Part shown: positions 13,456-56,067 of the stretch, piece after piece
Position numbering within the stretch: the first letter of the stretch is position 1
Layout: every line of letters starts with the position of its first letter
Origin: Selaginella moellendorffii
Lineage: Eukaryota; Plantae; Lycopodiophyta
Direction: 5' to 3'
DNA: 64,000 nt
Assembly (NCBI RefSeq): GCF_000143415.4
Contig: NW_003314324.1
Span: 472,011 to 536,010, forward strand
Program-made: the position numbers and the translations under genes
The notes under the pieces: model-generated
Seen by the model: the letters and a program-made list of their open reading frames with translations, nothing else
What the model was told of the DNA's origin: nothing
Database searches by the model: none

Positions 13456-16400
13456 TGTGAGACACAAAATCCCTAGGCCCCAAAGTGGAGCCGGAAGGGC
13501 GCCACATGGTAGTGGCCGAAGCGAGAGCCAAACGAGCGTAACACGTTTGGACCAAAAGCTCCGACTTGAAAAGTCAAGAGCGGGAGTGGAACTCCCAACG
13601 AAGTGCTCGAGGAACGAGCACGAAGCGAGCAAAAGGCGAGGCTCCAAAAAGGGACCCAAAAGGACCAACACATGACACGTGGGAGTGTCCGAGATGGACT
13701 CGAGTTGGAGTCCAAAGTGGAGTCCGAGATGGACCCGAGTTGGAGTCCAAAGTGGAGTCCGAGATGGACTCGAGTTGGAGTCCGAAGTGGAGTCCGAGAT
13801 GGACCCGAGTTGGAGTCCAAAGTGGAGTCCGAGATGGACCCGAGTTGGAGTCCGAAGTAGAGTCCGAGATGGACCCGAGATGGAGTCTGAGATGGAGTCC
13901 GAAGTGGAGTCCGAGATGGACCCGAGATGGAGTCCGAGATGGAGTCCGAGATGGACCCGAGATGGAGTCCGAGATGGACCCGAGATGGACCCGAGATGGA
14001 GTCCGAGATGGAGTCCGAGATGGAGTCCGAGATGGAGTCCGAAGTTGAGACCGAGACCGGGACCGAGACCGAGACCGGGACCGAGACCGAGACCGAGACC
14101 GAGATCGGGACCGAGACCGAGGCCGAGGCCGAGACCGAGCCCGAGCCCGAGTCCGAGTCCGAGTCCGAGTTCGAGTCCGAGTCCGAGTCCGAGTCTGAGT
14201 CCGAGTCCGGAGCCTGAGAGGGTGAAAGCCCAAAGCGTTCGTCTCCCAGACCCTGGGGGGTTTGGTGAGCTCCAAAAGTATAGTAGGGGGAGGACTGCAG
14301 TGGAGCCAGTTTGGCCAGGAAAGGCCAGTTTGGCCCAGGAAGGCCAGACCCAGTGTTGGGTGATGAACTGACCACTGGGAAGTCCAAGACTAGAGTGAAT
14401 ACGAACCGACAAGCGGGGTAGCTTGGTGAAGTGTTCAAGAGCCGGCTCTAGTTCCCCCGGGAGATCGACTGGCCGATGCTCCCAGTCCAAGTGTGGGTGG
14501 CACTACCTACTTGGGTACCTGGTGTGGCTCAACGGAACCCGCTCTAAGCCCATGGCTAGAGCACCCAAGGGTAGAAGGCGAGGAGAGTACCCAGGTGGCT
14601 CGCGTAAGGCCACGGTGTTCCGAAATGTTGTCCCAAAGGCCCAGACTGTGGAAAGGAAGAGGAGCAGTCCTCTGGGGTAGTGACCAAGGACGCAGTCACA
14701 CAGTGAGGAAGTCCTAGAGGATAGTGGGACTTAGTGGTCGGGCCGGTGGGCCTCGATCCAGTGGCAGTGTTGGCGAACACAGCCAAGGACAGAAAGGGAC
14801 TTGGTGGGGACTGGAACAGAGATATTGGGGAAGGCTATTCCCCATGTCTGTAGGCATCCTAAGGATGTCAAGGAGTGGATCTGGGATGATCACTCATGGA
14901 TGGATGACCCAGTCTTTGAGAGACGGGATTGGAATGTAGGTGGTGTTGGACCACCAGTGTGACCGAGGTAAATGGGCATGGCCTTAGCGTAACGGGCCGA
15001 TATGTCGGTGGTACCTTGGGGTGTCGATCATGGGATCGGACACGTGGAGCACTTGGACCAAGTGCTAAGGTTGAGTGGCATGGATGCCATTCTCGGGGCT
15101 AGCAAGCCCCAAGTCCTGAGTTGGGCTTATGGAGGTTGTGAATGAGACTCCTCCAAGTGGTCGGAGGTGTGGTTAAGTGACTAAAGTAGAATGGAAAAAT
15201 TAGTCGCTTACAACTTGGTATCGGAGTTGTTCCTTAGTCCGACTTTTATTGGTGCTCAAGTATATCACCACTAGTGTTGGCATCGGAAGGTCTGAGGAGT
15301 GGGCCTATCCTTGAGGAGTAGCAAGTCGGGAAGACATGGCTCTCCATTACAGTTCATGTGTGAACTTGTAGACGAGGTGGTGGATAGAAAAGGGCCAATA
15401 ATGGAACGACTTTGGGATCTTGGGAACAGTATATGGTTTTCCTCAAAGAGTTGAGGATGTGATCCAGATGAGTGTTTGACTTAGCAAACTGGCTAATGTA
15501 GTTGTAGTAAACAACTACAGTTGGGATCACGGGAAAGATAAAGACTCCAAAGCAATAAAGGAGTCACAAGATTTTCCTCATATAGTTGAGGTTGGTGCTC
15601 ATGAATGTGAGACCAGAAGTAATGACCGTGGGAGGCCAAATACGGAAGAGGACTCAAGTCCTTGAAAAGGTAGCCGGGGCTACCTCTAATAAATGCTGGA
15701 ACAACCCCAGGAGTTGGGGGTGTATTAGGTGGATGAGTTGGTGTTCTCATCACATGGACAAGTAGTCCTAAGGGGCAAAGGTTGCCCCCAGAGAACAAAA
15801 TCAAGTGTCGGAGTAACACTTGTGAAAATAGTCCTTTTGAGTAGGACAGGAATGCAAGAAATGTATTCCAGTGAGCTAGTGCCTCACAAGGAGGACCTTA
15901 CGGGTCTGTGGATTAACCAAGTCCAAAACTGTTGGATGACTCAAGTAGAGTCAACGGATGGTCCTAAAAGGACTGATGGAAGCATTTGGACTGAGGTGTG
16001 TTGTACCCCACAAAGGATGGGGGGGGATCATAGGATCCAAGGATGAGAACAGAGGGTATCTCATCGATGGCAATGTGCCATGCTAAAGTTATGGGAAAGG
16101 TGTTCCCAGAAGAAAACAACTTTGACATAAAGTTGTGTGTGACCTCTATGGGGCAGTGCTAACAGATGGTTGGCATGAGAAAGAGCGGTGTTGGTCTTGG
16201 CAAAGACTTAGACACGAAGGGAAATGTCATAGAGGTAGGCTCGTGGAGCCGATGGTGTGGAGACACCAAATGTGCCAAGGTGTGATACCTTGAGGCTATG
16301 TTGGTGGGTTCATGAGAACCCCTTGCTAAAGGAATCCCAATGGAAATGGGAATGGCATAGCCTAAGCTGCAAAGCATGCAGTTGGAGTGTGGTGACCCAG

Positions 16401-19400
16401 ATAGTGATGGAGGTGTGAAAGCACCAAGCAATGAGTTGTAGGACTTGACAACTATGAGGCAACTAAGCAAGAGGTGCAAAATAACTGATTAAACGGGTAG
16501 AAGGTAGCTACCCAAGACTTCTAGTATAGGGAAGTCGGATATACCCTTACGGGGGATAAGTTGCTTGTGTTGCGATATAGTAAGTCAATGTCATAAACGG
16601 AAATACTCATTGTCAAGAAAGCCATCATTGGGACACCCGAACACTCTAGAACACCAGAAGGTGGTGTTTGATGTCACGAGGGCAATGGATAAAGCCCAAG
16701 GGACTAAGTCCCTAGCGAATGATGGATAGAAGGTGCTATCCAAATGTCCAAGGTTGCGGAGACAGAAGAGAACTGTCTACCCGAGTTGGACAAAGCCAAA
16801 AATGGAATTTTGGCAAGGCTAGTGATGGGCATGTAAAGGCCCATAAGCAACAATGTAATCCCAGTGTGTGGGATTATAAGGTGAGCATACCCGGATTGAG
16901 GAACCACTCCCTAGGCTATTGGGTAGGTTCATCCCTAAGAATACTTGCTAAAGCATGATAGAAAGTGCGAAGCTATCCTCCTGGTCTGAAGGAGAATGAC
17001 CAAAGGAAAGGTGTGAAGCCAAAAAGCAAGAAGTAAGGGGAGAGAACCGAACCGTAGGAATCAAAGGGCATAACCAAGGTTGGTTATGCCAGCTGGGAGT
17101 GGAGAATCAAGTGGGGACTCGAGGGTGTTGCCGCTAGCAACCGTGATGCCATGGAGAGTCTAAAATATGGAATTGTCCATGTTAGACTATGTGGCATTTG
17201 GAAGGCTTGCAAAAAGGGAGGCCGTAGCAAGCTGAGGGACAGAGTTCCTTCAAGGTTCCCAAAGACGATTCTAGGTAGCTTAGTACCTAGAAAGGCCAAG
17301 TGTAAATGGTTCATGGAACGCGCGAAATCAGAGTGGCGCAGCAGAAGCGTGGTCTTGAAGCTTGCCATGAGGCAAGGCTATCAAAGTTAGGGAAGTAGTT
17401 CCCGAGTGTTCAAAGAGAGGGCTTTGAATGAAAGTCGATGGTCAAGGACTGTCACGCTTATGCAGGAACCATGTTACAGTGGTCGGAGGACTTGCCAAGC
17501 AAGATTGGCACGTCAGGGGAACAAATACCCTAGTTGAAGGTGATAACTTCAAAAAGGGTGGGCCATGGGGCCGAGCATGGAGGAGTCCATGCATGATCAC
17601 AGACATGTCAAGTGAGAGGACTTGGCAGTGTGGAGGAACTAGGTTCCTAAGCTGTGATCTGTAGCGCACTTTAAAAATAAGTTGGTGCACCGGCATGGGG
17701 AGTCACGCCAGGCATCTTGTGTGATGCCATCCGTAGATGCATATACGGAGGTTGGGTTCGAGTCCCGACCCTCTAGTGCTTGGGTTCGAGTCCCAAATCA
17801 TTAGGGCGTGGTGATGGTTTGGAATATGAGGACACTCATATTTCGGTGGTCATGGACTCTCAGTGGGGAGACTGGTTTGGGCACACCGCCAAGCGAGGGA
17901 TGCCTCGGAGTCGTGATGCACGGTTAGATTGCTTAGTGTGAAAGCTCAGCATATCTAACTTGAACACTTTGGTGCAAGTGGCACCAAGGTCGTGGTGAGT
18001 GAGATGGGGACACCTAATCTCAGTTGCTATGAACCCTTGGCCGTAAGGGCTAGCTTGGGTGCACCGCCAAGTGTGGGGGATGCCCCCGGGGTTATAGTCA
18101 ACAACTTGGAGGTCTAGAAAACCAAGTACCTCTTGGCAACTCTGTTAAGGTGCCAAGGTGAGATCACTAGGTGATCTTATGGCCAGATAAGGACAAGGTC
18201 CTTGGTTGGCTAAGGAATGAAGTTCCTGGTTCAAAATGTTGAAATTAAACTGTTTAAGGTGGTGTGGCTTGGTCGTGATAACCAAGTGGGAAGAGCACCT
18301 AAGGGAAATAAACTATGTCCGTGCGATGGCATAGTGAGTCCGAGGAAAGTAGTCTCTATAAAAGACCCATGGGAGGGTCACGAAGTTGGGCCGTGGATAG
18401 AGCCTATAGCAGAAGATGCTAAAGAGACGTACTAGGGGTGAACATCCTCCGGACTTGGCAAAGAAGAGTCTTTGCTATGGAACCGAAACAATACCTCAAG
18501 GAGGGAGGTAGAGATTCGATGTTGCTTGGTGCAACAATCAACGGATAGGAGCAAAAGATGAGTGGCCAAGATAGGGCCGTGGAATCCCTTGGAAGGAATC
18601 CAAGTGACAAAGTTAGGCGAGGAACACTAATGTGTTGGATGCTAACAAGTTGCGGGAAAGGAAGTGTGTTTCCAAGGAGGGATTCCGAAATGCTCCGATT
18701 TGGCGAAAGTGGAAGCTCCAAGGGAGGGAGCGGTAAGGTAGCCAAATGATAGGGCCATGAACAGCCCTAGCACAAAGTATGATAACTAGAACTTTGGCAC
18801 GAAATAGAAGAGAGGATGATGGTGCCCTCGAGTAGAGAACTTCCTAGGATGGGAAGTGGAGTTGCACAAAAGGTGCAAGGCAAGGTGTCGGAGACATCTA
18901 GGAAATTGACTCCAAGAAGTCAAAATTCAAAGTTCCAAAGTGCAAAGGTTATATCGATGGAAATTGAGACTACTCGAGAAGGAGTAGTGGGATTGACTTA
19001 GAGAAGGGTCTCTAAGAGGTTTAGCGAGAACTAAACCAATAAAAGGAGAGAACCACTATATGTGGTCCAATCAGTCTCTAAGTTGGAGAGACTACCCTCC
19101 TTAGAGGATATGCAAAAGGCATGGTGAGCCTTCAATGTCCAACCATTGACGAATATGGAGAAGGCATGGTGAGCCTTCAATGTCACACCATTGACAAATA
19201 TTGGCTATGCGCCAAGGATGGAAATGGTAACACATGCGGGTGTTACTTTATAAAATGGTTCACCGTTCGATGAGGACATCGAACTTCGTCTATGGGTGGT
19301 GGAGTTGTGAGACACAAAATCCCTAGGCTCCAAAGTGGAGCCGGAAGGGCGCCACATGGTAGTGGCCGAAGCGAGAGCCAAACGAGCGTAACACGTTTGG

Positions 19401-21092
19401 ACCAAAAGCTCCGACTTGAAAAGTCAAGAGCGGGAGTGGAACTCCCAACGAAGTGCTCGAGGAACGAGCACGAAGCGAGCAAAAGGCGAGGCTCCAAAAA
19501 GGGACCCAAAAGGACCAACACATGACACGTGGGAGTGTCCGAGATGGACTCGAGTTGGAGTCCGAAGTGGAGTCCGAGATGGACCCGAGTTGGAGTCCAA
19601 AGTGGAGTCCGAGATGGACTCGAGTTGGAGTCCGAAGTGGAGTCCGAGATGGACCCGAGTTGGAGTCCAAAGTGGAGTCCGAGATGGACCCGAGTTGGAG
19701 TCCGAAGTAGAGTCCGAGATGGACCCGAGATGGAGTCCGAGATGGAGTCCGAAGTGGAGTCCGAGATGGACCCGAGATGGAGTCCGAGATGGAGTCCAAG
19801 ATGGGACCCGAGATGGACCCGAGATGGAGTCCGAGATGGACCCGAGATGGACCCGAGATGGAGTCTAAGATGGAGTACGAGATGGAGTCCAAGATGGAGT
19901 CCGAAGTCGAGACCGAGACCGGGACCGAGACCGAGACCGGGACCGAGACCGAGACCGAGACCGAGATCGGGACCGAGACCGAGACCGAGGCCGAGGCCGA
20001 GACCGAGCCCGAGCCCGAGTCCGAGTCCGAATCCGAGTCTGAGTCCGAGTCCGAGTCCGAGTCCGAGTCCGAGTCTGAGTCCGAGTCCGGAGCCTGAGAG
20101 GGTGAAAGCCCAAAGCGTTCGTCTCCCAGACCCTGGGGGGTTTGGTGAGCTCCAAAAGTATAGTAGGGGGAGGACTGCAGTGGAGCCAGTTTGGCCAGGA
20201 AAGGCCAGTTTGGCCCAGGAAGGCCAGACCCAGTGTTGGGTGATGAACTGACCACTGGGAAGTCCAAGACTAGAGTGAATACGAACCGACAAGCGGGGTA
20301 GCTTGGTGAAGTGTTCAAGAGCCGACTCTAGTTCCCCCGGGAAATCGACTGGCCGATGCTCCCAGTCCAAGTGTGGGTGGCACTACCTACTTGGGTACCT
20401 GGTGTGGCTCAACGGAACCCGCTCTAAGCCCATGGCTAGAGCACCCAAGGGCAGAAGGCGAGGAGAGTACCCAGGTGGCTCGCGTAAGGCCACGGTGTTC
20501 CGAAATGTTGTCCCAAAGGCCCAGACTGTGGAAAGGAAGAGGAGCAGTCCTCTGGGGTAGTGACCAAGGACACAGTCACATAGTGAGGAAGTCCTAGAGG
20601 ATAGTGGGACTTAGTGGTCGGGCCGGTGGGCCTCGATCCAGTGGCAGTGTTGGCGAACACAGCCAAGGACAGAAAGGGACTTGGTGGGGACTGGAATAGA
20701 GATATTGGGGAAGGCTATTCCCCATGTCTATAGGCATCCTAAGGATGTCAAGGAGTGGATCTGGGATGATCACTCATGGATGGACGACCCAGTCTTTGAG
20801 AGACGGGATTGGAATGTAGGTGGTGTTGGACCACCAGTGTGACCGAGGTAAATGGGCATGGCCTTAGCGTAACGGGCCGATATGTCGGTGGTACCTTGGG
20901 GTGTCGATCATGGGATCGGACACGTGGAGCACTTGGACCAAGTGCTAAGGTTGAGTGGCATGGATGCCATTCTCGGGGCTAGCAAGCCCCAAGTCCTGAG
21001 TTGGGCTTATGGAGGTTGTGAATGAGACTCCTCCAAGTGGTCGGAGGTGTGGTTAAGTGACTAAAGTAGAATGGAAAAATTAGTCGCTTACA
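13456..21092 (+). mobile_element. Young non-autonomous LTR retrotransposon (LARD-like), family C; LTRs 13456-15212 and 19306-21092
   Basis: Near-identical ~1.77-kb TGTGAG..CTTACA LTRs. Perfect TSD CTGAG (13451-13455, 21093-21097). PBS TGGTATCGGAG at 15216-15226. No long ORF in the 4.1-kb interior. Confidence 0.95.
13687..14210. repeat. 12-mer/6-mer satellite (ccgagatggagt, ccgaga, ccgagt) in the 5' LTR; copy at 19537-20090
   Basis: Directly visible. It explains the low-complexity ORFs in all frames. Confidence 0.95.
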
Positions 21093-24000
21093 CTGAGGTA
21101 GTAGTTCCAAACGTTTCTGAAAAACTGACCATCAATTTAGGTTCAGAGAGACACTTGATGCAAAGCCAATTGAACTTTGTGTAGTTGTGTGCTGCAAAAG
21201 AGAAGTGCATTCGTGTGGGAGATGGAAGCATTTTACCTGTTTGCACAACTGAGGATGTGCGAGTTCCACTGGGAATAAAGTCTCTACTCTTGAAGAATGC
21301 GTGGTATGTTCCAAAGATAGTGAAGAATCTGGTTTCTATAGCCAAGCTTACGGATGATGGTCTGGATGTGAATTTCTCCAAACATCAATGTAAAGTTCTT
21401 GCAAATGGTTGTCCATTACTGCATTTTCCCAAATGTGGTCACTTGTTTGAGAAGGAGATAGCTTCTAGAGAAAAAATCAAACGCTCCTGAGATATGCATG
21501 ACTGTAGATAGTTCTCTTTGGCATGCTCAACTTGCACATGCCAATCCCCCTCTCATCAGGTGTATGCAGAAGCAGGAGCGTGTGGATGGCTTCAACGACC
21601 ATGTTCTTCAAAGTTCAGTAAAATGTCATACTTGCATTTTTGGCAAGCAAACCTGTTGTACTTTCAAACCTGCTGTGATCAGAAGCACTCATCCGTTGCA
21701 GCTCGTTCACTCAGATGTTTGTGGACCCATGCAATTATTTGCTCAGAATGGTGTGAAGTATTTTGTGACATTTACAAATGATTTCTCCAGGCACACAAAC
21801 GTCTTTGTCACAAAGATGAAGTCTTCAGCAAATTCAAGCAATTTGTAGCAAAAGCCGAAGTGAAAACTGGTTAGAGGGTTTGTTGTTTACATACTAATTC
21901 AGGAGGGGAATACGTCAACAAGTCCTTCAGCAATTCTGTGCTGAACAAGGAATTCTTCATCAGCGCTCTTGCTCTCATACCCCTCAACAGAATGGAGTCT
22001 CTGAGTGCAAGAACAGGACAATCATGAACGTAGTTCGGTGCTTCCTTCAAGAATTAAGACTACCAAAATTCCTTTGGGCTGAAGCAGTTGGATCAGCTGT
22101 GCATGTTCAAAACCTCCTCTCTCATTCTTGCAATCCCAACAAGATCCTAGAAGAGCTTTGGACTGGTCAAAGACAATCAGTAGTGCATCTCAAGTGTTTT
22201 GGTTGTTTAAGCTTTGCAATATGGGTCTCAGCAAGTTGGAGAGCAGAAGCAAGCTGACCTTTCTTGTTGGATATGACTCCAATTCAAAAGGATATTGCCT
22301 GTACCAGCCTGGTAATCATCAAATTTTTGTAAGCACTGATGTTCGTTTTGATGAAGGAACACTCTACAAAGATTGCATTCAAAAAAAAGGAAGCTCAAAT
22401 CAAAATGTGAACTAGGCTCCAGAAGAATGGAGTTGGGATGGTGTTAGAGATGTTGATGAAGATGACGATGATCTGACAATCATCTATCCCTCATCTCCTT
22501 CACCATTCAACACCAATCTCTAGATCTTTTCACGCACGATGAGCAGCATCATCCTGTTCTTCAAGAAGAACTGGAGAAGTCAAAGTTGACAGGCTCACAC
22601 GTGATCTACCATTCAACATGGAGAACTATGGGTGGACATCATCTGGATGATCAAACAGAGCACCTCATCCCAAGCAGTGGTCTTTTGTAGCAATAGAAAT
22701 AGCTTCTAAACTAGTCAACTTTGAGCAGGCGATTCAAGCTCCTGATGCAGATAAGTGGATTTCAGCAATGCAAGATGAGTTGGATTCTCTTGATGAGAAC
22801 CAAACTTATGACTTGGTGGAAGCTTTTGAAGGACGTGAAATTGTCAGATCATATTGGGTGTTCAAGCTTCACAGAAATCCTGATGGATCGGTTCAGCGTT
22901 ACAAGGCTAGACTTGTTGCTCAAGGATATTCACAAGTTCTTGGAGTGGATTTTGATGACACGTTCTCACCAATTGTGAAGCAGACAAGTATCAGAATGCT
23001 TTTGGCTTTTTCAGCGGAGTTTGGTTTGCACGCACTTCACATGGACATAAAAAAAACTTTCCTTAATGGGAACTTGGAGGAGATATTTATGCGGCGGCTT
23101 TGTGCTTTTTAGATCATGGCGCTCCAAACTCATCTGCAAGCTTCGCAAAGCTCTTTATGGCCTTAAGCAAGCTTCTTGTCAGTAGTATGAATGTTTGGAT
23201 TCTTTTCTTACGGATCTCGATATACAAATGTTGAACAGTGATAGAAATCTATATCTTCTTCAACATGGTGATCACTTTGTTGTGATGGCAGTTTATGTGG
23301 ATGACTATTTGATTGTCAGCAACAATGACACTGTTTTTAAGGATGTGAAGATCAAGCTCATGGACAAGTTTGTGATGAAGGACTTAGGAGTTGTGAGGCA
23401 GCTGTTAGGGATGGAAGTTGATAGGGATGAAGCAGACAGGACAATCACCCTCACACAGCACCAATATGTAAAGAAGCTTCTCAACCAGTTCAACATGACA
23501 AATTGCAAATCTGTGGCTACACCAGTCATCATTGGCATCAATTTCACAAGCAAGATGGATGATTTATTTGATCAGCCCTCAGGCTACAGATTGCTTGTTG
23601 GAGGACTACTCTACCTCACCAACATGACTCACCCCGACATCTCCTTTGCCGTTGGTCTCCTCAGCCGATAAATGCAGTCTCCGAGTTGTTATCATTGACA
23701 GATGGCAAAGAGAGTTTTGAGGTATTTGAAAGGAACAGCTGCTCATGGATTGGTTTATAAATGTTCAGGTTAGTCCAAACTTGTTCTTCAAGCTTACTGC
23801 GATGCAGATTGGGCTGGCAACTTGGATACACGATATTCAACCTTCGGAATTTGCTACATAATTGCTAGTGCTCTAGTTTCATGGGGAAGCAAGAAGCAAA
23901 TGATAGTTGCTCTTTCCAGTGCAGAAGCAGAGTACGTAGCTGCCAGTAAAGCAGCAAGGGAAATCATCTGGCTTCGTCAATTACTTGGAGAACTCAATCA

Positions 24001-25566: not shown

Positions 25567-26779
25567 TGTTTAGTATTATTTCTTAACCTAATTGATCAAT
25601 CCAACTTAAAAATAGAATAAACTAGAATATACTAAAAAAGTGTTTAAATACAAAACTAATCTAATTATTAAATGGTAGAATATCTTAAAATATCAAAGTT
25701 AGTGGTAAAGGTGGTTACCCAAGGCCCAATATCCCAACACCCTTAATCAATTAGAATATAATATTTTATTTATATTCTCTTTCTTTCTATATTTCATCCT
25801 TAACCAATTGGAAAAAAATATACATTTTTATTCATATGCCCTATTCCTATATTTCCTGATTCTTTTGCTAAATATTAATCAAATATATAGTATAATTCCT
25901 TTAGTTAATCAATAGATTTTAGATTTCCAGGAAGTCACCTAACCCATTACTATTTAATAATATTTAACCTAAATATTTTAAAATTCTTAACTAATTTAAA
26001 AATGGTTCTTTCCCTTTATATTTGAACTTTTATGCAAGTCATTTTCTTTGATTACTCACAATTTACAAATAAGTTAAAAAATATATGCAACTAGTATGGT
26101 TATATTGTTCTAGGAACAATAACTTTGTTTGAACATAATATTTTTTTGGATTGCTTCCAATAGTTTTTGCAACTTAGTGGGAACAAAATGAAAATTCAAA
26201 GATTTGCAATCTAAGAATCAAAAGAATTCTTTAAATGATGGTGAGTTATCTCATGGCCATATCAAAACATTAATGACCTCTAAGTGGTAGCTTAAACAAA
26301 TATAATTATTTCATGGTTTTAATATTTTATAATCCAAAAAACCAAGTGGGAAAGCAAATGTAAATATGGACAAAGGATAGGAGTCTTGTATTACAAAAAA
26401 ATCAAGTAGTACATTTTTTTTTTAATGGGTTTGGTCTATATTTAAGATATAGTATTAAACACTGATTACAAATGCTCTTCCTTCGACTCTGGAACAGCAA
26501 TTAATGTAATTGTTTGATGTTATATAATTGCAGTTGAAAAATTAAACTCAATTGATGGTGGTGTTTATGTATAACTCTTCCTACTCTTATTGTCAATCCT
26601 CGTGTTCATCTAGAATTCTTCCATAGAAATGATGTGTAGTGAAAAAATTATAACTGCTAGATTAAGGTATATTCTAAAATACACCTAAATATTTATAGTA
26701 TAATCCTTTTACATTTAATTTTTGATAAATATAATGAGAATATAAATTACCACCTACATTCAAACAAGCACCAAGAGAC

Positions 26780-28525
26780 ATGACGAAGGTGGCACTGTTG
26801 GTCGTTCTCTCGGCTGCATGCACCTTCTTCTCCGGATTCCAAAACGTTGCCATTTGTTCTTGGCTCCAGCCATTTCTCCTCTTGCATTTCTTCCACAAGT
26901 CAGGGATTTCGCGCAATTCTTTCTCATGGCGCTCCGCGGCGCTCACAATCCTCCTGGCGCTCCTCCTCCAGACCACCGCCGCGAGCCTGGCGTTCCTGGC
27001 ATTCTTCCCGGGAAAGGTGAGCCCGGACAGCTCCACGGCCAGCAGCGTGCCAATTGTGGGAATAATCTGGGCACTGGCGCTGTGGATGTTTCTTCTCCTC
27101 CCATTTCTTGCAAGCATCGGCTACAGGAAGCGTTTTGACCGAGCAAGAACGTCCCAGCCGCTGGTATTCGCGTCCATCTGGACCACGGCGTGGTTGTTGT
27201 GGAATCGACTCGGCGGCGTCGGCTCCTTCCTCCATCCCGCCGTTTCCCAGGTTACAATCTTGCCGCTGGTGATGAGCGCCGGTGTGTGGGGGATCGATGG
27301 GATCGCATTCCTCATGGCGTGGTTCTCGGCGATTCTCCACGACAGGGCCGTTCTCGACGAGAATCTTTCCAAGATGGAGAAATCCGATAAGAAGCGTGCT
27401 ACGCAGCTGCATCGCGGCCACTCCCTGGCGTTTGGAGCCATTGCTCTCTCGATCTTGTTCTACGGCAGCGCCAGGGTCTCCATTTTCTCGGGGGATTTCT
27501 TCCAGAAGGACATCGCCCTCACGATGAAGAAAACAGTGCCGGTCTCTTGCGTCCTGGGCAAGGTCCTCTTCTACGAGGACATGGATGTGATGCTCAACAA
27601 GACGAACCAGCGCCTCCGAGCTGGCGATCGATTGGTCCTCTGGTCCGAGGCTGCGGTGAAACTCGACCTCAAACAGGAGAGGGATTCTCTCCAATTCAAA
27701 GCCGGACAGATCGCTTCCCAGCACGGTGCCTACGTTGGCATCACTTACGAGTACAAGGACGCGAGCGTCGGGAACTATTTCGACCTCGTTCTTCCCGATG
27801 GCTCCATTGGATTTAGCTACAGGAAATCCCACTTGGTTCCATTCATGGAGTGGTATGGAACTCCAGGGGATCCCATTCTTCCTGCCATCAAGACCGAGCT
27901 CGGCCGGATTGGAGGAGCTATTTGTTACGATTTCGAGTTTCCAGACCTGATGCGGCAGGCCGGGAAAAAGAGGTAGAGCGAAGTTATGACGGTGTTCTCT
28001 AAGTTTCTGGTGAATGTGCTAGGATTGATATCATGCTCCAACCAGCCGCGACTTGGGGAGCAAGCGGTCCCCGGGCGAAAGAGGCCGATGCTTTCCGTGT
28101 CGTGGAGAATGGCTTCAGTTGGTTTCGATGCTCCACGGGAGGCGTTTCAGCGGTTGTAGATCCATATCTCCAGACATTCGATTACAGGTGTGACAGTTTT
28201 GATCAATCAAAGCTCTCTAATATTCTTCTGTTTCTTTGGCAGGGAAGGTATCTCTGACTCGGTCTTCGCCATGGCACTCCCAGTAATCGGGAAGGCCTGG
28301 ACGCTTTACCCAAGCTACGGCTTTCTTTTCGCTTGGCTAGTGGCAGCACTCGCTGCGGTACACGTCTCCATGCTCTGCCTCCCTCTTGGAGTCGTGATGT
28401 ACATCCTTGACAAGTCCCCTCCCGCCTTTGCGTTCTACATCACTGGTGACCGATCCTTCAAGGAGTTTGAGAGGTCGGAGCTACGTTGCGTGCTGTTGCC
28501 AGAGGAATCAAGCGTGCTTGTCTAA
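26780..28525 (+). CDS. Apolipoprotein N-acyltransferase (Lnt)-like multi-TM carbon-nitrogen hydrolase; exons 26780-27972, 28023-28187, 28243-28525
   Basis: N-terminal TM helices. Nitrilase-fold triad LWSE / YRKSHLVP / AICYDFEFP. RVVENG and C-terminal TLY+TM motifs. Two GT-AG introns (50 and 55 nt) keep the frame. Confidence 0.85.
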
Positions 28526-29196
28526 GGTTCCTGTGAAGCGCAATCTGTAAAGAAGTGTATACAAAACATGGGTGATATGGACGTAGCATTTGCATTGACT
28601 TAATCGTCGTTTGGTGCAGCGAGACTAGGCCGGATACCGAAGCACCGCACGATTTGGAGGAGTCCAAGGCGTTGGATCGAGTCAGCTGGAGTATCGATTG
28701 CAAAGAAGGCAGCCCCACGCTGCCATGACGAGGGCATCGCGTTCCATCTCCATCGCTCTGACGTGTGAGCATCGTGGGGCAAAGGAATATTTGCTTTGTT
28801 AGTACCTATCATGGCAGCAAGTATCGTCGTCAGGCATTAAACATTGATCGTTTTCTAGTTTTCCATGAAGAGTTTTGAGAACATTCGCATAGAATCAAAC
28901 ACATTCCCTCACGCGGATCATCAAACACAATTTTCACCTGCTGCACTTTCCACACACCTCAATCGCTAGGTATCTGTCTGATTGAAGTTGCTTGCGATCT
29001 CTTGGAGCCCCTGGTGATTTGGTGCAGGAGGTCCACGCTCACATCCTGGAATGATGGGTGTTATATAGACAAATGATTTGTATTTTCCCATTTTGTCATT
29101 ATTTGAATTTATCAAGCATGAAACGCAATTGGTACATCTAGTCTTAAATTCTCGAGCAATTTGACAACATAATCCAGGCAGCAGTTTATTTTTTCC

Positions 29197-29909
29197 TTAG
29201 ATTCTATCAATGCCAAGCCCATACATTTGCCAGGAGAGGATACATAGCTCTGCTGCTCGCCATTTTGATATGCAGGTTCCACACTCGAGGCTCCGACATG
29301 CAGCTAAAAGGCACAGCCAATTCAAAGAAGTGGGAACAAATGGCATGTTTCCGATGAGTTCTCTTGCATTGTCAATATAACCAGCTCTTGCCAAGCCATC
29401 GATTATGCAGGAGTAATGCTGGTGACATGGCTGAATGCCACAGTCAAAAGCCATCGAAACAAAGCAACACTGCCAACTTGGCCATGAGCATTGAGAGCGG
29501 AGACAAATCCAACTTGGTGGTAAATGCCGGCCATCTGCATAGTGTGAAACAACTTAAACACAGAAACCGAATCCCCTGCTTGGGTACATGCACTGAGCAT
29601 TGCATCCCAAGAAACTTCATTCTTCCCTGGCATCTGGGCAAAAGTTTTTCTTGCAAGTGAACTCTGGCCACTAAGGCCATAGGCAGCAAGCATTATAGTC
29701 CAAGAAATTACGTCCTTCTCCACCATTGCATTGAACATGACCCTTGCTTCTACCATATACCCGTTTTGGGCATAAGCATCAAGCATGGTGTTCCAAGAAA
29801 CTAGCTGTTGGTATGGCATTTTATGGAAAACTCGTCGTGTCAAAGTCCATATCGTGTCAAAGTCCATATCTCTTGATCCTGTGTAGACATACAATAATGA
29901 ACTCCACAA
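29197..29909 (-). pseudogene. PLS-class PPR pseudogene
   Basis: VSWNTMLDAYAQNG repeats and an E-domain HYSCIIDGLARAG, split across frames. Confidence 0.8.
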
Positions 29910-30265
29910 TACTAAATTTTAACATGGCATTTTGTCAAATATGCACTTTATTATTCTTGCATCTAAATTTGCAATCTAGTGTCATTTTATATTTAGTAAG
30001 TTTTTGTAATTGTTTTAAAGACTAATTTTTGGGACTAAAGTAAAATCCTAAAGCATGCATTCTTTTACAAAGGGGGGTTTTGTTTATAAGCCTTTTTTCT
30101 ATTCTATTAGCTTAATTTAGTGCTTAACAATCTTTCAGGAATGATCATTTACAATTATATTTAGGCTATCCTTTAGTCACCATGGTACTTCTCTTAAGGT
30201 TTACCAACTTTGGTTCTCCTTCTATATTTGTCAGCCATGAGAATTAAATTAGGCTCCAATACCAA

Positions 30266-39489: not shown

Positions 39490-41183
39490 ATGAACAGAAA
39501 CTCTAGCATTCATTTTATTCAATCCTGCAAAAGCCTTTATGAAGCAAGAGAGATTTACCTGAATCTTAAAAGGAATCATCCACTTGCTGACTCAGCAACA
39601 AGCTCATGGAGATGTTTGGCAAATATAGAAGCCCACAAGAGGCACGCCAAATCTTTGATACCATCAAACACAAAGACTCCTTTTCACGGGCTTTCACATT
39701 ACGAGCTTATGCCCAAAACTCCCATCTTAAACATGCAAAAGAGATCTTTGACAAAATGCCGCAAAAGGATGTCCTTGCATGGACATCCATGCTCTTGGCA
39801 TATGCCCGGAGTGGGCATGTTCTCAATGCCCAAAAAACATTTGATGAGATGCCGCAACACAGCCTTGGAATTCTCATGGAATGCCATCCTGTCAGTCCAC
39901 GCACACAGCTGGGATCTAAAATATGCTGAAAGGATTATCTTCGGGATGCCCGAGTGTGATCTCGTGTCTTGGAATTCCATTCTTGCGGCATACGCCCAGA
40001 ACGGGCATGTAGAGGGAGCGAAACGTGTTTTCGATTCTATGGAGGCTCGTGACCTTGTGTCATGGACGACAATCTTGGTTGCCTTGTCGCAGGGCGGAGA
40101 TTTGCACGGAGCAAAACTTTTGTTTGATGCAATGCCGCAGCACGACCTCGTCGCCTGGACCGCGGTTCTTGGCGTGTACGCACTGAACGAGGATGTCGAT
40201 TCGGCACAGAGGATTTTCCGCGAGATGCCTGAGATAGATCTCGTTTCGTGCAACACCGTGATGCGATGCTGCCGTGATGCTAGACCATCAAAGCTTATAT
40301 TTGACTCCATGCCACAGAGAGCTCTCTCGTCGTGGACAACAATGCTCGCTGTTCTTGCCAAGAACAGCCCCGGGGAGGAAACCAAGAGCTTTTTCTATCA
40401 AATGCCGGAGCTTGATCTTACTTCCTGTACGATAATGTTGCTCTCACAACCCTCAGACTTGGAGCTTGTGAAGGCCACCTTTGATCAAATGCCGCAGCGA
40501 GACCTGTGCTCTTGGAACTCTGTTCTTTCGGCGTATGCCCAATCAGGGCATTGTGACTTTGCTTTAAGACTCTTTAACGAGATGCCCGAAATGGATATGG
40601 TTTCGTGGAACACAATGTTAAATGCGTTTTTTCTGCATTTTCCCGAGAAGGCCATATTGTATACGCAAGGAAACTTTTTGATTCAGCCCCTGACAGAGAC
40701 CAAATCTTGTGGAGCTCCATGATAGCTTCATATGCACAAGTAAGCACCACTGCCAGCAAGGCCTTTCATCTCTTCAACGAAATGCAGGCCGTCGATTCCC
40801 CAAACACATCGTGCTTCGCATCCATCCTGGCCGCAAACAGCCACAAAGGCAGCTTTCAAGCGGGAAAGAGCTTCTTCGCTTCCATGGTTGTGGATCACGC
40901 CATTGAGCCCACAAGGCAGCACTCCAGTTGCATGGTAGATCTCTTGAGCCGAGCCGGCCACCTTCACGACGCCAAAGATCTAATCTTAAGCATGCCGTTC
41001 GTTCCCAGTGCTCTCGAGTGGACGTGCCTTCGCGGAGCATGCAAGAGCCACGAGGATTATAACAATCTTAGACTGGGAGACGATGTAGTGAGGTCTGTAA
41101 TGGACGTAACCGACGCAACCCCCACTGCTTTACTAGCAAACGTCTACACAAGCTCCCAAACAAAAAATCCACACTATATGTGA
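39490..41183 (+). pseudogene. PLS-class PPR (E-type) with two frameshifts
   Basis: PPR motifs are distributed over ORFs 39606-39929, 39490-40722 and 40605-41183 (HSSCMVDLLSRAG..MPFVP). Confidence 0.8.
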
Positions 41184-42303: not shown

Positions 42304-44217
42304 TTACGATTCGCGTCGGGTTCTCCTTTGGCGGGCGCCCTCGCCTTCCTTCTCAATCTCGTTGCCTGTCGCGTCGTCCTCCGCCTTGTCCTTGGAATCG
42401 TCCGGGCTGGAGATGTCTTCCTTCTTGGACTTCTCTACGGTCACCTGCGCAAGACAAACAACCGTGACAATCCAAAACTCGCGCAACGCTATTGATAATT
42501 GTACCTTCGTCTTCTTTGGGGGCGATTTCTTGCCACCAAATAGAATCTTAAACAGCGTGACCACCACGACGAGCGGGATCAAAGCTATGGCGCTCAAAGA
42601 AATGGTTGGGAACTTCTCGGCCTTCTCCAGAAGATCCTGTGTGTCACAAACGAAAAGAAAGTTAGAACACGAGACAAAGCCCATGCTCGCGTGTTTTACT
42701 TACAAGAATCTTTTCCTTCTGTGACGCCAAAGCCGGGATGTCGGCAACCTTGCGCAGGTACTCAAACATCTTTGCCTGAAAAGATTCAAGGTCGTCACAC
42801 ACAAAGAAAAAAAAACGACAAAAGACAGACAAAGGAAAAGTACCTGGATGCCGTCAGGACTCGGAGTCGCTTCTTCAATCTTTTGCTTCTCCTTCTCAGC
42901 CTCGTACTTGGGCTTCCATTTCGTCTCCCTGTACTCTGCTGCCACAGCCTCGTCGGTCGCCACCAGGATGTTGTCAAAAAGAATGCCGTCCTGCATCGTC
43001 CAGATCTCGATCCCTATCGCCGAGATCGGCTCTAGATCCGGCCTGTCCAACTCGAAGTACTCCGGGTTCGGTATTTGCTTCGGAGCCCAGATCCCCTTGT
43101 AAGCCGGGTTGTCGATCATCGGAGGATACCACTTCCCCTTGTAGTCCGGGTTCCTCTTCATGGGCCTCTTCCATTCTCCACACCCAGACGCTTCCTCACA
43201 CTTTGGGTTGCTGATCTTCGGGGGCTCCCACTCGCCATCCTCCTCGTCGTCCCAGTCCGCGGGCTTGCTAGCTTCCGGATCGTCAACCTCGTCCGGCTCG
43301 TTGTCCAGCCAGTCATCGGGCTTGACCGCCTCCACGTCCTCGATCTCCAGTGGAGCGTCCTCGTCCCAATCCTCGGGCTTGGTCGCTTCCGGATCGGGGA
43401 TCTTCGCCCGCTCGTCCCAGTCCTCGGGCTTCTTGTCGTCGGGATCGGGGATGGTCTTGGGCGGGATCACGGCCGGCTCGAAGTCGCTCGAGAGGAGGTC
43501 GACGCTCTTCTCCTCCTTGCCGTCGACGAGGATCTTGAGCGTGTTGTTCGGGTAGATCACTGCCGTGTAGACGTGAGAGAGCTTGTCAGCCACTGGCGAT
43601 GGCGGGTACTTGAGGTGATGCTCGATGTGCTTGTCGGATTTGGGGCCCTTGTGCTTGTAGATGAAGTGGACCTTGTTGGTGGCGCCGCATTTGTCCGGCC
43701 CAAACATGATCGAGTAGGGCGACTCGTTGCTGAAATCGCCGGGCGTCCATCCAGCCTCTTGCGGGAGGAGGAACTTGAGATAGGCGCCGCCACACTCCAA
43801 CCCCTTCTGGAGCCGGACATCGTACTGGAGAACCACGACGTCGTCCTTGAGATCTACCGATTTGGGCAGAGTAGCCGCGATTCCGTGCTTCTTGGCCGGC
43901 TCGCTCACAAGAAGGCCGTAATCCTCGTGACCCTCGCTCTTCTCGTGCTTCCAGTGGCCTGCCAAGAAAATCGGCGCCGATGAGAATTTCTAGCCACGGA
44001 ATTTCGCGATCAAGAACAGACCTTGATAATCGCTGTGGCCAGAAACGGTCCATCGACTCTCCCAAGAACCATCGAAAGGCTCGTAGAACACCTACATTCG
44101 ATCGATCGATCCAATCCAGACCTAGAAAGAAAAAGAATCAAGCGCGCTTACCACATCGGCAGCTACCGCGGCGGCCCCAATCGCCAGCAATCCGAGGAAC
44201 AGCAGCGCCTTGGCCAT
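42304..44217 (-). CDS. CNX1: Calnexin (multi-exon)
   Basis: Signal peptide MAKALLFLGLL, ECGGAYLK, IMFGPDKCG, P-domain KPEDWD repeats, TM helix, C-terminal RRRTRRES. Confidence 0.97.
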
Positions 44218-44525: not shown

Positions 44526-47294
44526 CTATAGGGACATGATCTCCAGAGCGTCCCTTGTTCTTCCCATAATGTCTAGAGCGGTCGCAGCAATGTGAGCTGC
44601 TGTTAATCCAGCCTCGGTCATTTGATCGTTTGGAGAACCATGGTCGATGTATCGATCGGGAAGAACCAATGGTCGCCACTGCAATCGATCGAAAGAGAGA
44701 GTGATATGAGCACAAACTTTACGTCCAAAAGAAAGAACTTGAAAAATTTGCCTTCAAAGTTCCGTCGAGAAGTCCATCCAGAGCCATGAACTGTGCTACG
44801 TGAGAGCCAAATCCTCCGATTGATCCTTCCTCCACCGTGATAAGTACCTCGTGTTCTCTCGCAAGCTGCCGGATCAAGTCGCGGTCCAGTGGCTTGCAAA
44901 ACCTCGCGTCTGCGACCGTGGCCGGGAGTCCACAGCTCGCTAGAAGAGCTTGAGCGGCGAGACACGACTGTACCATCGTTCCATAGCCCAGCAGCGCGAC
45001 TTTAGATCCTTCGACTAGAATCCTCCCCTTGCCAACCTGTGTGAGGAGTATAGCTTTGAAAATGGAAAACAAAAAACTCGACAGGTTTCTTACCTCGAGA
45101 GGTATGCCTTTGTTTCCTGGTGGAAGCACCACCCCGATACCATTTCCTCTGGGATAACGAAAGCAGCTTGGACGATCATCAATAGCAGCGGCGGTGGCGA
45201 CCATATGGAAAAGTTCGGCTTCGTCCGACGGCGCCATGACCACCATGTTTGGCAGGCAAGCCATGTAAGTTACGTCAAATGCTCCACAATGTGTCGGACC
45301 GTCGGCTCCAACTAGACCCGCTCTGTCCATGGCAAATCTCACGGGTAGCTTTTGGAGATCAACGTCGTGAACAACCTGAGACAAAGCCGCATCATAAACA
45401 AGAAAACATCTGTGGCAAGAAAGAGCTCCTACCTGGTCGTAAGCTCGCTGGAGAAAGGATGAATAGATAGCACAGAATGGCTTTAGGCCTTCGCAGGCAA
45501 GCCCCGCAGCGAAAGTCACGGCATGCTGCTCGGCAATACCGACGTCGAAACATCTATCTGGGAAACGTTTCTGGAACATATTGAGGCCCGTTCCTCCACC
45601 CATAGCCGCGTGTATGGCAATGATCCCATTGTCGACTTCAGCTTCGGCAATCAGGGCCTCTGCAAAGTACGTGGTATAAGCTTGCGTTGCAGTCTTTCCT
45701 TTGAATTGCTTCCCAGTTGCCGGATCGAATTTAACAACACCTGATCAGAAACAAGGAGAGTGTCAAACTCAAGTATTTTGGAGGAGATTCACTTTCCATG
45801 GTACTTGTCTGATGCACGCTCGGCATATGGATAGCCACGACCCTTCTCCGTGACAATGTGAATCAATACCGGACCCGTCGTTCGCGTGTTTTTCACCTCC
45901 TTGAGAATTGTAACAAGGTCTTCGATGCTGTGGCCATCTACAGGTCCAATGTAGTAAAGTCCCAGCTCCTCGAAAAGAGTAGACCCCGATCCACTTATCA
46001 TTCCACGCGCATACTCGTCGACCTTTGCTGCGAGTTCATGCATTGGTCCTCCAAGTTGTTTAGTCACTCCCTGTAATATATATACGAACGTTACTTGTGT
46101 ATGCATTACTAGACGTTAGTACCTTAGCAACTTCACGAAGTTCACGAAGAGGTCTGCTTGACTGTAATTTGCTGAGAGCGCTGCTCAAAGCTCCCACCGG
46201 TGGGGCTGGACCGTCCAAAGTCGCCGTTGGCAGAGAAACTTGCTTGTTATCATTTAGAATAACGATCATATTCGAGTCCAAGTAACCAGCGTTGTTCATG
46301 GCCTCGTAAGCTTGACCCGCCGTCATTGCCCCGTCACCGATCACGGATATCACATGATTCTTGTTTCCCATCAAATCTCGGGCCACAGCCATGCCTGTGA
46401 CATCAAAGTTTTGTCAATCGATCAATATCGAACTACGTGATTGAAGAGAGGTTGCCTACCTAAGCCAGCGGATATACTGGTGGAGCTGTGCCCGGCACCA
46501 AAGGAGTCATACTCGCTCTCTGATCGTTTTGTAAATCCAGAAAGTCCATTAGTCTGCCGCAGGGTGTGCATTCTCGATCTTCTTCCTGTAAGAATTTTGT
46601 GAGGATAGGCCTACGACCAACACAGGATTAGCGTGACTTTTTTTTCACAGTGAAGCTTGCGGGAGTCGAACTACCTGATGGCCGACGTCCCAAAGAATCT
46701 TATCTTCTGGCATGTTGAAAACATGGTGAAGAGCAACAGTGAGCTCAATCACTCCAAGACTCGCTCCAAGATGCCCGCCGGTCTTCGAAACAGTGAAGAT
46801 GATGTCCGATCGAAGCTCATCTGCCAATTGTCGCAAATCCTGCAAACAAGAGGAATATTGTTTTGTAGTTTTCTAGCATTTGTCATCTCCATACCTTGGT
46901 GCTAAGATTTTTCATATGCAAAGGGTAGTTGACAGTGTCGAGCAAAGGCGTGGGAGGCTTCTCCGCGAAATACTCTCCTCCGGGCCCCGTCGACGCTGCT
47001 GCTGATGCTGCCACAGCCAAAAACCTCCGAGCCTACACATCCATCACAAGTAAGAGTTGACCTTGGAGCCGGCCAGAATTTGGCCTGCATTGCTCGCGGC
47101 GAGGAGATCCTGTCGAAATTTCGATCACGTACCTTGACAGAAGCGGGCTTGACGCCCCTGCGCTGGAGATTTGTGTGAGCTTGAGGCAGTAGGTATCCGG
47201 ATTCCGTCGGCCGGGCCACAAGGCGGCTGCTGTTGGCGCTGCTCGTGCTACATTCCGCTCCTCCTAGCGCCATAGCTGCTGCTGAGGGTGCCAT
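44526..47294 (-). CDS. DXS: 1-deoxy-D-xylulose-5-phosphate synthase (multi-exon, plastid transit peptide)
   Basis: [19 protein letters not shown] motif [48 protein letters not shown]. Confidence 0.98.
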
Positions 47295-53763: not shown

Positions 53764-53840
53764 GGCATCATGAAACTCCGCAAACTTCCATGTATTTACA
53801 AACTTAGCACAAAAACTATAAAAAAAACCCAAACCGTTTG

Positions 53841-55198
53841 CTAGATGCAAGCTCCAGCGCAGTTTACCAGGTCTCGCAGATGGCTCGACGCCAGATCTTC
53901 GTTCCCCTGCGAAAAAGAAGAATTTTTCATGAGCCTGGACCGAGTTTATCATTGACATACCTCCCAGTCGATCGCATGAAGGTTCAACTCATACGTTACC
54001 CTTCCAGCAGACGCCTCCATCTCCGCGCGATTGGCGACCATAAACTTCCACTGCGTTTCCTTGCCTCGAATTATGGTCACTCTGCGATGCTCGACGTTGC
54101 AAACGCTGAAGCGCTTTGCAAAGGAGTCGCGACCCAGTGGCCAACGCAAACCGCCCTTGACAGTGTCGTCTACAACAGCAGCGCTGGCCAGTGCTTCATA
54201 GGCAGCTCTCTCCTCGTCCTGTTTCTAGGAAAACTTAGCTCTCGATCAACAGCAAAGGAAGACTTAACTGGAACGTCGGTAAGCAGCGTCTCAGAGTAGA
54301 CTGCGATACGCAAGTCCGTTTTGCGTCCTACGCACAGATAATCAGACACAAGATGCCTTAATGGATCAAGCTTGAGCTGCTCAGGTTTCAATGATTATCA
54401 CCCAGAAATCTGGCGAAAGAGCAATACCTTCTTCAAGACTAGAGAATGCTCGCTTTCATGAGCTCGCTCGCACACACACCTGACAAGGTAACGAGGACGA
54501 TCAATGTCCTTCACCTGTGAGCAAGCGATCAAGCGCAAGCAAGTCTATGGAAAGTAGTTACCTTGAAGTGGTAGCGTTCGCAAGTGGTGACTTCCACAGC
54601 CTCTTGTTGTAGAGCAAGGTGCTCAAACTGGTGGAAAAGTTCTGGCGCTATTGCTGTGTGGAAGGTCCTCCTAAGCCTTGAGGATTCCTCCTCAAGATAT
54701 CCTGGACTGAAGCTTTGGACCTGTTGGGTATCTTTTCGGAACACAATCGTTCCAAGTCGCAAAACCATCTTGAGCTTGCCTCGTGAATCGTGCACGCTCG
54801 AAGCTGCAAGCGACCCTGCCCTGCCTCGCGTCGCTGTCATAACATCCAGAGAGAGGGACTCTATTCCAATGTTCTCAGCCAGAGATCCATTGGTGTTTCC
54901 TGGCACCAAAACAGAACTTTGAGTGAGCTATCAAATGATATTCTTCGATCGTACCTGGATGATCGCCGTCGTCCACAACAGTGACAATGTACTGCTGCTT
55001 ACCATCCAGATGAGCGTAGGTCTCCCCTTGAAAAACCTGGAATTCGAGGCGCGCCTCGCCGGAGAGGACATGAAACTGTAAAATGCAGCTAGCAGCTTCC
55101 CTGATCACCGGAAATGGAACGGTGATCCTCCGCCCGCCCAGCGCCTGGGGCGATCGCTTGGCCTCCCCGAGGCGCCTGTGAGGAGGAACGTAAGGCAT
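53841..55198 (-). CDS. Conserved plant protein of unknown function (MPYVPPHRR start; multi-exon)
   Basis: N-terminal YxPPHxR motif. Spliceable exons (RLGTIVF, RHLVSD..DLRI). Last exon GNEDLASSHL..CI*. Confidence 0.7.
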
Positions 55199-56013: not shown

Positions 56014-56067
56014 CTATGGATTGGCACGATACTTTATGCTGACGTGACGATTTCGCGACCGTCCGAT

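Follow-up and report, generated by a model that had tools for sequence, protein, structure and literature searches.

An Lnt-like membrane enzyme gene of the nitrilase superfamily in the lycophyte Selaginella moellendorffii

Lipoprotein N-acyltransferase (Lnt) belongs to branch 9 of the nitrilase superfamily. It is regarded as an enzyme found exclusively in the bacterial envelope, and as a target for antibiotics. In Lnt, Arm 3 is the 40-residue loop between β5 and β6, and together with Arm 1 it forms the portal for the phospholipid and the lipoprotein; Pro353, Phe358 and Met362 of Arm 3 and Trp237 of Arm 7 are important or essential in mutational studies (PMC5500888, Wiktor et al.). Bacterial lipoproteins have no equivalents in higher eukaryotes (PMC8689077). 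Here we describe an Lnt-like gene, LOC112351584, at positions 26780-28525 on the plus strand of a window of 64,000 nucleotides, the whole stretch of DNA that was analysed (Selaginella moellendorffii, assembly GCF_000143415.4, contig NW_003314324.1, positions 472,011 to 536,010). The host of this gene is a eukaryote with no known bacterial-type lipoproteins, whereas the hosts of Lnt are bacteria. No paper on a eukaryotic Lnt-like enzyme was found in the literature searched.

According to the fold model and the family profiles described below, the gene product belongs to the nitrilase superfamily and is a thiol enzyme integral to the membrane, with the architecture of Lnt in full. Judging from its sequence, it is not a canonical Lnt. 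The explanation that we prefer, with a probability of about 0.6, is a eukaryotic membrane enzyme of Lnt architecture that performs ping-pong acyl transfer. It is very probable that the locus is a real, vertically inherited gene for an enzyme with the Lnt fold.

Gene structure and predicted fold

The gene consists of three exons with an intact frame, and the sum of the exon lengths is divisible by 3. An open reading frame (ORF) of 398 residues with an ATG start occupies 26780-27976, and the coding sequence runs onward via two introns to the stop codon at 28523-28525. The translated exons match XP_024545461.1 of S. moellendorffii at 397 of 397, 54 of 54 and 93 of 93 residues (100%). This protein (P0018, 546 residues) is the product of LOC112351584 and is named "uncharacterized protein" in RefSeq; the gene model given here is the RefSeq model. 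On the scaffold of the protein, GL377628.1 (assembly GCA_000143415.2), the locus is 100% identical to window positions 16780-38525. The features of the gene are as follows.

26780-27972, plus strand: exon 1, residues 1-397 and two bases of codon 398; seven predicted transmembrane helices and the first two thirds of the nitrilase-like domain
27548-27550, plus strand: codon of Cys257, one half of the cysteine pair of the eukaryotic clade
27647-27649, plus strand: codon of the catalytic Glu290 (WSE), which corresponds to E267 of E. coli Lnt; invariant in all alignments
27824-27826, plus strand: codon of the catalytic Lys349 (YRKSH), equivalent to E. coli K335, invariant
27923-27925, plus strand: codon of the catalytic nucleophile Cys382 (ICYD), which corresponds to C387 of E. 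coli
27973-28022, plus strand: intron 1, 50 nucleotides, GT..AG, phase 2
28023-28187, plus strand: exon 2, residues 398-453; QPxxTW and RVVENGF/RCS motifs of the nitrilase-like domain, and the C-terminal match of TIGR00546
28129-28131, plus strand: codon of Cys434 (RCS), the other half of the cysteine pair of the eukaryotic clade
28188-28242, plus strand: intron 2, 55 nucleotides, GT..AG, phase 2
28243-28525, plus strand: exon 3, residues 454-546 and the stop codon; end of the nitrilase-like domain, the eighth transmembrane helix (TM8) and a non-conserved C-terminal tail

The initial annotation of this DNA had pointed to a multi-transmembrane N-terminus, a Glu-Lys-Cys triad in the contexts WSE, KSHLVP and ICYD, a transmembrane segment following TLY at the C-terminus, two small introns and a high guanine-cytosine (GC) content. 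All of these were recovered: seven predicted helices are encoded in exon 1, the triad is E290, K349 and C382, a hydrophobic helix follows TLY in exon 3, the introns of 50 and 55 nucleotides have GT..AG borders, and the GC content is 0.56 at 27001-28000 versus 0.30-0.34 in the flanks.

The exons were searched singly, and full-length analyses were performed with the database proteins P0018 (identical) or P0001 (a paralogue of 96% identity). The full protein P0018 scores 46.6 bits with the Pfam model CN_hydrolase (PF00795), above the gathering threshold of 23.2. Exon 1 alone gives 2e-8 (34.3 bits) with CN_hydrolase and 7e-15 with TIGR00546. The best NCBIfam model is TIGR00546 'lnt' with 73.7 bits, and the next model scores 26; the equivalog cut-off of TIGR00546, 132.9, is not reached, and E. 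coli Lnt scores 411.1. The LNT_N model (PF20154) stays below its threshold on exon 1 (13.2 bits versus 27.1; 139.9 for E. coli), and it gives no match at E <= 0.01 on the full protein. Of the two profile searches that the initial annotation had proposed, the one for CN_hydrolase thus succeeded and the one for the Lnt N-terminal domain fell short.

The fold was predicted for P0001, the paralogue and not this copy, from an alignment of 80 sequences, resulting in a mean predicted local distance difference test score (pLDDT) of 93.2 and a predicted template modelling score (pTM) of 0.92. When this model was compared with the PDB using Foldseek, the top 24 matches were all Lnt, with TM-scores of 0.62-0.76 in either normalisation over about 520-560 columns. 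The references for Lnt were E. coli b0657 (PDB 5N6H, 5VRG and 6NWR; sequence for the alignment from NC_000913.3) and P. aeruginosa 5N6M. According to the model, the helices and strands match the solved Lnt structures end to end, through the eight-helix membrane domain and the nitrilase-like domain, and helix 484-501 is aligned with H8 of Lnt. The nitrilase-like domain shows the α-β-β-α sandwich fold. Soluble amidases align with the model over residues of about 250-490 only. The soluble enzymes of the superfamily in plants, such as N-carbamoylputrescine amidohydrolase (PDB 5H8I) and NIT2/ω-amidase, have the fold and the triad in common with it, but they lack the membrane domain and match this same region only.

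The sequence profiles agree with the fold comparison. The family profile matches the Lnt chains over their full length (4e-45). A profile built from the eukaryotic clade alone finds P. aeruginosa Lnt at 3.5e-16 and E. coli Lnt at 1.8e-12 over positions 10-503, and NIT2 follows close behind on the catalytic domain. A single-sequence search of the PDB missed Lnt, which was recovered only by the profiles and the fold comparison.

In the structure-based alignment, the identity between Lnt and the Selaginella-type protein is just 15-16%. The triad E267/K335/C387 of Lnt is kept as E290/K349/C382, and it is present in 63 of the 64 non-canonical rows. We take four further Lnt residues, E343, Y388, E389 and W415, to be essential from mutational work. 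Y388 and W415 are kept as Y383 and W409 (W409 in the local-pair alignment). Glu357 of the VPFxE motif probably corresponds to E343, at which MAFFT placed a gap. E389 is replaced by Asp384, and Asp is found in every non-canonical row. Arm 3 is about 19 residues shorter than in Lnt, about half of its length, and in the model the loop spans residues of about 352-371; the spacing from the catalytic Lys to the catalytic Cys is 32-33 residues here versus 49-53 in canonical Lnt. Trp237, which is Trp in 3 of 3 canonical rows, is replaced by Phe264 in Selaginella, and across the eukaryotic clade this position is either variable or gapped. Because Arm 3 is shortened and Trp237 is not conserved while the triad and the membrane domain stay, the plant protein appears to have kept the catalytic machine and the membrane domain and to have a remodelled entrance. 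The term "Lnt-like" in the initial annotation is therefore apt for the fold and the triad, whereas the protein departs from canonical Lnt in several of the features that define it.

Relatives of the protein

A word-index search, which scores the best word-sharing candidates, gave only Selaginella paralogues at 91-95% identity, followed by Sphagnum proteins (36%) and a protein from a Ktedonobacterales metagenome-assembled genome (MAG; 28%); repeated with the family alignment, it gave almost no new members. An exhaustive HMMER search with P0001 gave 3393 matches at E <= 1e-3 and 94 at E <= 1e-30, and the labels recovered for the best matches are eukaryotic. The nearest relatives are from the land plants Sphagnum (peat moss) and Calypogeia fissa (liverwort) and the streptophyte algae Closterium (two strains), Spirogloea and Klebsormidium. 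These are followed by the chlorophytes Chromochloris and Volvox, the early-diverging fungi Dichotomocladium, Basidiobolus, Mortierella and Ambispora, the amoebozoan Balamuthia and the rhizarian Paulinella; two MMETSP protists also carry the family. The neighbour cluster in the ESM Atlas is mostly from Basidiomycota. We infer that the metagenomic members of the clade that carry no organism label are eukaryotic, according to their position in the tree, a multi-exon structure (L007) and a neighbouring TPT transporter (L012). No seed plant, fern, Physcomitrium or Marchantia appeared in the named outputs, and this is suggestive and not proof, as the searches scored just the best or word-sharing candidates. 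Among the labelled matches there were no animal sequences, and no search was aimed at animals specifically. The distribution supports one of the two origins offered in the initial annotation, a patchily retained membrane acyltransferase or amidase of unassigned substrate.

Two relatives have odd annotations. In the Spirogloea model P0207, an ornithine/aspartate carbamoyltransferase is joined at the N-terminus, and P0208 of Klebsormidium is named 'fibrillarin'. These look like gene-model fusions or misnaming and not like real architectures.

The tree was calculated with IQ-TREE under the LG+C20 model with posterior mean site frequencies (PMSF) from 50 rows and 518 columns. Three groups were obtained: canonical Lnt (100/100), bacterial Lnt-like proteins from Chloroflexota, Acidobacteriota and Bacteroidota (99/95), and a eukaryotic clade (99/94). 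Within the eukaryotic clade, the Viridiplantae (100/96) are composed of a chlorophyte-type clade (100/99) and the Streptophyta (99/95), and Selaginella is located inside the Streptophyta. FastTree and quick trees concur. When Selaginella was constrained to group with the bacterial Lnt-like clade, the tree was worse by 46.9 log-likelihood units and was rejected by the approximately unbiased (AU) test (p-AU 0.021). Within the Streptophyta, Selaginella forms a long branch that is sister to all the others and not to the bryophytes, which we read as branch-length noise. According to these trees, the family has been inherited vertically in the green lineage, within the eukaryotic clade. The phylogeny suggested in the initial annotation came out vertical for streptophytes and chlorophytes, and no seed-plant member surfaced in the named search outputs.

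The bacterial Lnt-like CN hydrolases (loci of Ktedonosporobacter rubrisoli, Terriglobales and Cellulophaga, and MAG HEX6780351) form the sister clade in the trees. The first three of these were obtained by scanning genome contigs with the Ktedonobacterales protein. The bacterial proteins are about 28% identical to the Selaginella protein over the full length, and they share with the eukaryotic clade the short Arm 3 (spacing 30-33), the Asp at E389 and the loss of Trp237. In contrast to the Selaginella gene, they are intronless, and they score at or above the Lnt thresholds (P0007: 135.6 with TIGR00546 and 32 with LNT_N). The neighbourhoods of three such bacterial loci differ from locus to locus and give no functional clue; they contain MarR, TetR or cyclic-nucleotide (cNMP)-binding regulators, an aromatic-ring hydroxylase, a kinase, a biotin carboxylase and a PMT_2 glycosyltransferase. 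One member of the bacterial clade, P0169 (739 residues), is a fusion of VTT/DedA, LNT_N and CN_hydrolase. This fusion may link the bacterial clade to lipid handling; it is the only informative domain fusion among the longer matches and is too thin for a substrate assignment.

A cysteine pair distinguishes the eukaryotic clade. Cys257 is present in 42 of 43 eukaryotic rows and Cys434 in 41 of 43, and the rows without one or the other have gaps in partial sequences. Neither cysteine occurs in the 21 bacterial Lnt-like rows or in the three canonical Lnt rows. According to this alignment, the pair is a synapomorphy of the eukaryotic clade. In the model, Cys257 and Cys434 are located on two strands of the catalytic domain. 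They may form a disulfide in an oxidising compartment. Such a disulfide would fit a domain facing an oxidising compartment, as predicted by the topology of Lnt, and the pair hints at a luminal catalytic domain. An N-x-S/T sequon at residue 273 was also considered as evidence of glycosylation and was set aside as too weak, as it is present in only 15 of 43 eukaryotic rows.

Copies, expression and surroundings

In S. moellendorffii, at least 13 Lnt-like loci are annotated on four scaffolds, and some of them are truncated (P0003, P0011 and P0017). We presume that the assembly may contain two haplotypes, so that the haploid copy number may be lower. The paralogous loci have the following unit in common.

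26640-29950, no strand: duplication unit of about 3.3 kb, containing the gene and a minus-strand pentatricopeptide repeat (PPR) fragment

Over these 3.3 kb, the identity is 93.6% to the paralogous locus L009 and 94.3% to L010, and the similarity to both ends some 60-150 bp before the ATG. For three copies, Nei-Gojobori estimates made exon by exon gave dS of 0.046-0.087, dN of 0.020-0.029 and dN/dS of 0.23-0.47. The ratio indicates purifying selection on the copies after duplication. LOC112351584 is one intact copy in a locally amplified nuclear gene family. At L010, an extra Lnt-like copy lies beside the paralogue LOC112349320 (18123-18824 and 20443-21746); an insertion of about 1.6 kb interrupts it, and a CN_hydrolase remnant of 138 residues is annotated there.

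The expression of the family was followed in presumed-RNA runs. In run X3, the coverage is limited to 26904-28499. At intron 2, a contig joint from 28184 to 28240 omits exactly 55 bases with GT..AG borders (cut +3) at a depth of 51. At intron 1, a contig stops at 27973 and then shows the first 12 bases of exon 2. Many of the contigs bear differences of the paralogue type. The Lnt-like family is transcribed in these runs, and at least one member is spliced. The initial annotation had asked for RNA evidence of splicing: the joint at intron 2 and the contig from exon 1 to exon 2 supply it for the family, but this copy is not singled out and unspliced contigs are present too.

The initial annotation had placed the gene in isolation among retroelements. 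This is correct for the upstream side, with a copia RVT_2 fragment and a pair of direct repeats, but not for the downstream side, where PPR, calreticulin and transketolase-like genes are located. The copia-type reverse transcriptase fragment (RVT_2, 3.5e-23) is at 23195-23671 on the plus strand. The direct repeats, 13456-15212 and 19306-21092, are about 1.8 kb each, 97.4% identical and about 5.85 kb apart from start to start. In each there are internal self-similar blocks (70-78%), and ORFs are open on either strand. The pair resembles the long terminal repeats (LTRs) of a retroelement whose LTRs are internally repetitive, and related copies flank the paralogous locus L009. Directly 3' of the gene, inside the duplication unit, the PPR fragment occupies 29197-29909 on the minus strand, with a Pfam match for PPR at 29403-29906 (minus). 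Four long PPR ORFs are found farther downstream (39490-40722, 47680-49740, 51985-53958 and 56044-58356). This region also holds two ORFs on the minus strand, one for calreticulin (42700-43965) and one that is transketolase-like (44719-45603). Calreticulin and PPR segments are likewise duplicated beside L010. Other coding stretches in the window have a GC content similar to that of the Lnt-like gene.

Proposed reaction and alternatives

By analogy with Lnt, the catalysis would be of the ping-pong type (PMC5500888). Cys382 would take an acyl chain from a membrane glycerophospholipid and form a thioester, and the chain would then be transferred to the amine of a membrane-embedded acceptor at the luminal or extracellular face. 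The acceptor would most likely be a smaller lipid or a lipid-anchored amine and not an apolipoprotein of the bacterial type. Judging from the alignment, a bacterial-type lipoprotein is probably not the acceptor, because the long Arm 3 and Trp237, the guides of the Lnt portal, are missing. A different and probably smaller acceptor would also be expected because eukaryotes are without bacterial lipoproteins (PMC8689077). The transferase mechanism, taken by itself, is tentative, and we put its chance slightly short of even.

Several points weigh against the preferred explanation. Most enzymes of the nitrilase superfamily are hydrolases, and the direction of the transfer is assumed by analogy. Biochemistry of a eukaryotic Lnt-like member was not found in the literature searched. 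We infer the extracytosolic location of the nitrilase-like domain, and likewise the disulfide between Cys257 and Cys434. The fold was predicted with the paralogue P0001 in place of the LOC112351584 product. The sequencing runs are guessed to be RNA, and contigs were used instead of reads. In runs X1, X3 and X10 (27878-28254), some contigs cross both introns unspliced, and these could be intron retention, DNA carry-over or mislabelled DNA runs. As the copies are 92-97% alike, the expression is not assignable to LOC112351584 itself. The absence from seed plants is suggestive, resting on listings of best or word-sharing matches.

The main rival of the transferase is hydrolysis of an N-acyl lipid. 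As a membrane-anchored amidase, the protein would use the same Cys-Glu-Lys chemistry to hydrolyse the N-acyl amide of a membrane lipid, and water would be the final acceptor. The candidate substrates would be an N-acyl aminolipid, an N-acyl-ethanolamine lipid or a ceramide-like molecule. The prevalence of hydrolases in the superfamily is in its favour. However, the full membrane domain of Lnt is retained, which in Lnt brings the phospholipid and the acceptor to the active site, and Trp409 (Lnt W415) is retained in the local-pair alignment. We consider the amidase unlikely, although well ahead of the alternatives that follow.

A true Lnt orthologue, whose targets for N-acylation would be bacterial-type lipoproteins in the plastid or another organelle, would account for the triad and for the Lnt fold over the whole length. 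It is nevertheless highly improbable. The TIGR00546 score of 73.7 is below the equivalog cut-off of 132.9, Arm 3 is shorter by about 19 residues, and conservation of Trp237 is lacking, both being mutationally important (PMC5500888). Organisms without a plastid, namely fungi and an amoebozoan, carry the family as well, and in the sampled trees neither cyanobacteria nor alphaproteobacteria group with the eukaryotic clade.

Equally improbable is a functionless locus, either a duplicate in decay or a contaminant of the assembly. Many near-identical copies are present in a repeat-rich region, some of them truncated, and the expression could not be tied to this copy, as would be seen with a decaying duplicate. 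The frame is intact, however, both splice sites are canonical, the catalytic residues are all present, and dN/dS is 0.23-0.47 versus two other copies. A contaminant is excluded by the plant introns and the plant flanking genes.

The least probable explanation is a recent horizontal transfer from a bacterium or a fungus to the Selaginella lineage, the other origin offered in the initial annotation. In its favour are the bacterial nature of Lnt, the lack of counterparts to bacterial lipoproteins in higher eukaryotes (PMC8689077), the GC content of the gene, which exceeds that of its flanks, and the fact that no seed-plant homologue appeared. Against it, the closest relatives are other streptophytes, the clades nest like the species (Streptophyta 99/95, Viridiplantae 100/96, eukaryotes 99/94), and the AU test rejects a grouping of Selaginella with bacteria (p = 0.021). 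The gene also has two spliceosomal introns, its scaffold of 1.15 Mb carries PPR and housekeeping genes around it, and other coding stretches of the window are similar in GC content.

LOC112351584 itself is of more modest importance: Selaginella has at least 13 annotated copies, of which this is one, and it was already listed as uncharacterised in RefSeq. Contributed here are the quantified truncation of Arm 3 in common with the bacterial sister clade, the eukaryote-specific cysteine pair, the extent of the duplication unit and the dN/dS values. The phyletic pattern provides a marker of gene loss along the plant lineage, as the family is present from chlorophytes to lycophytes and was not seen in seed plants. 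The eukaryotic clade, with its Lnt fold, triad, remodelled portal and cysteine pair, implies that eukaryotes carry out a reaction at the membrane, acyl transfer or amide hydrolysis, that has not been assigned. It is possible, although doubtful, that many eukaryotes, including green algae, bryophytes, lycophytes, early-diverging fungi, amoebae and rhizarians, have an undescribed lipid-modification step of the Lnt type, in which an acyl chain from a phospholipid would be passed to the amine of a lipid or a lipid-anchored molecule at the luminal or outer face, and which would have been lost in seed plants. Culturable carriers of the family (Mortierella, Volvox/Chromochloris and Sphagnum) make its function testable.

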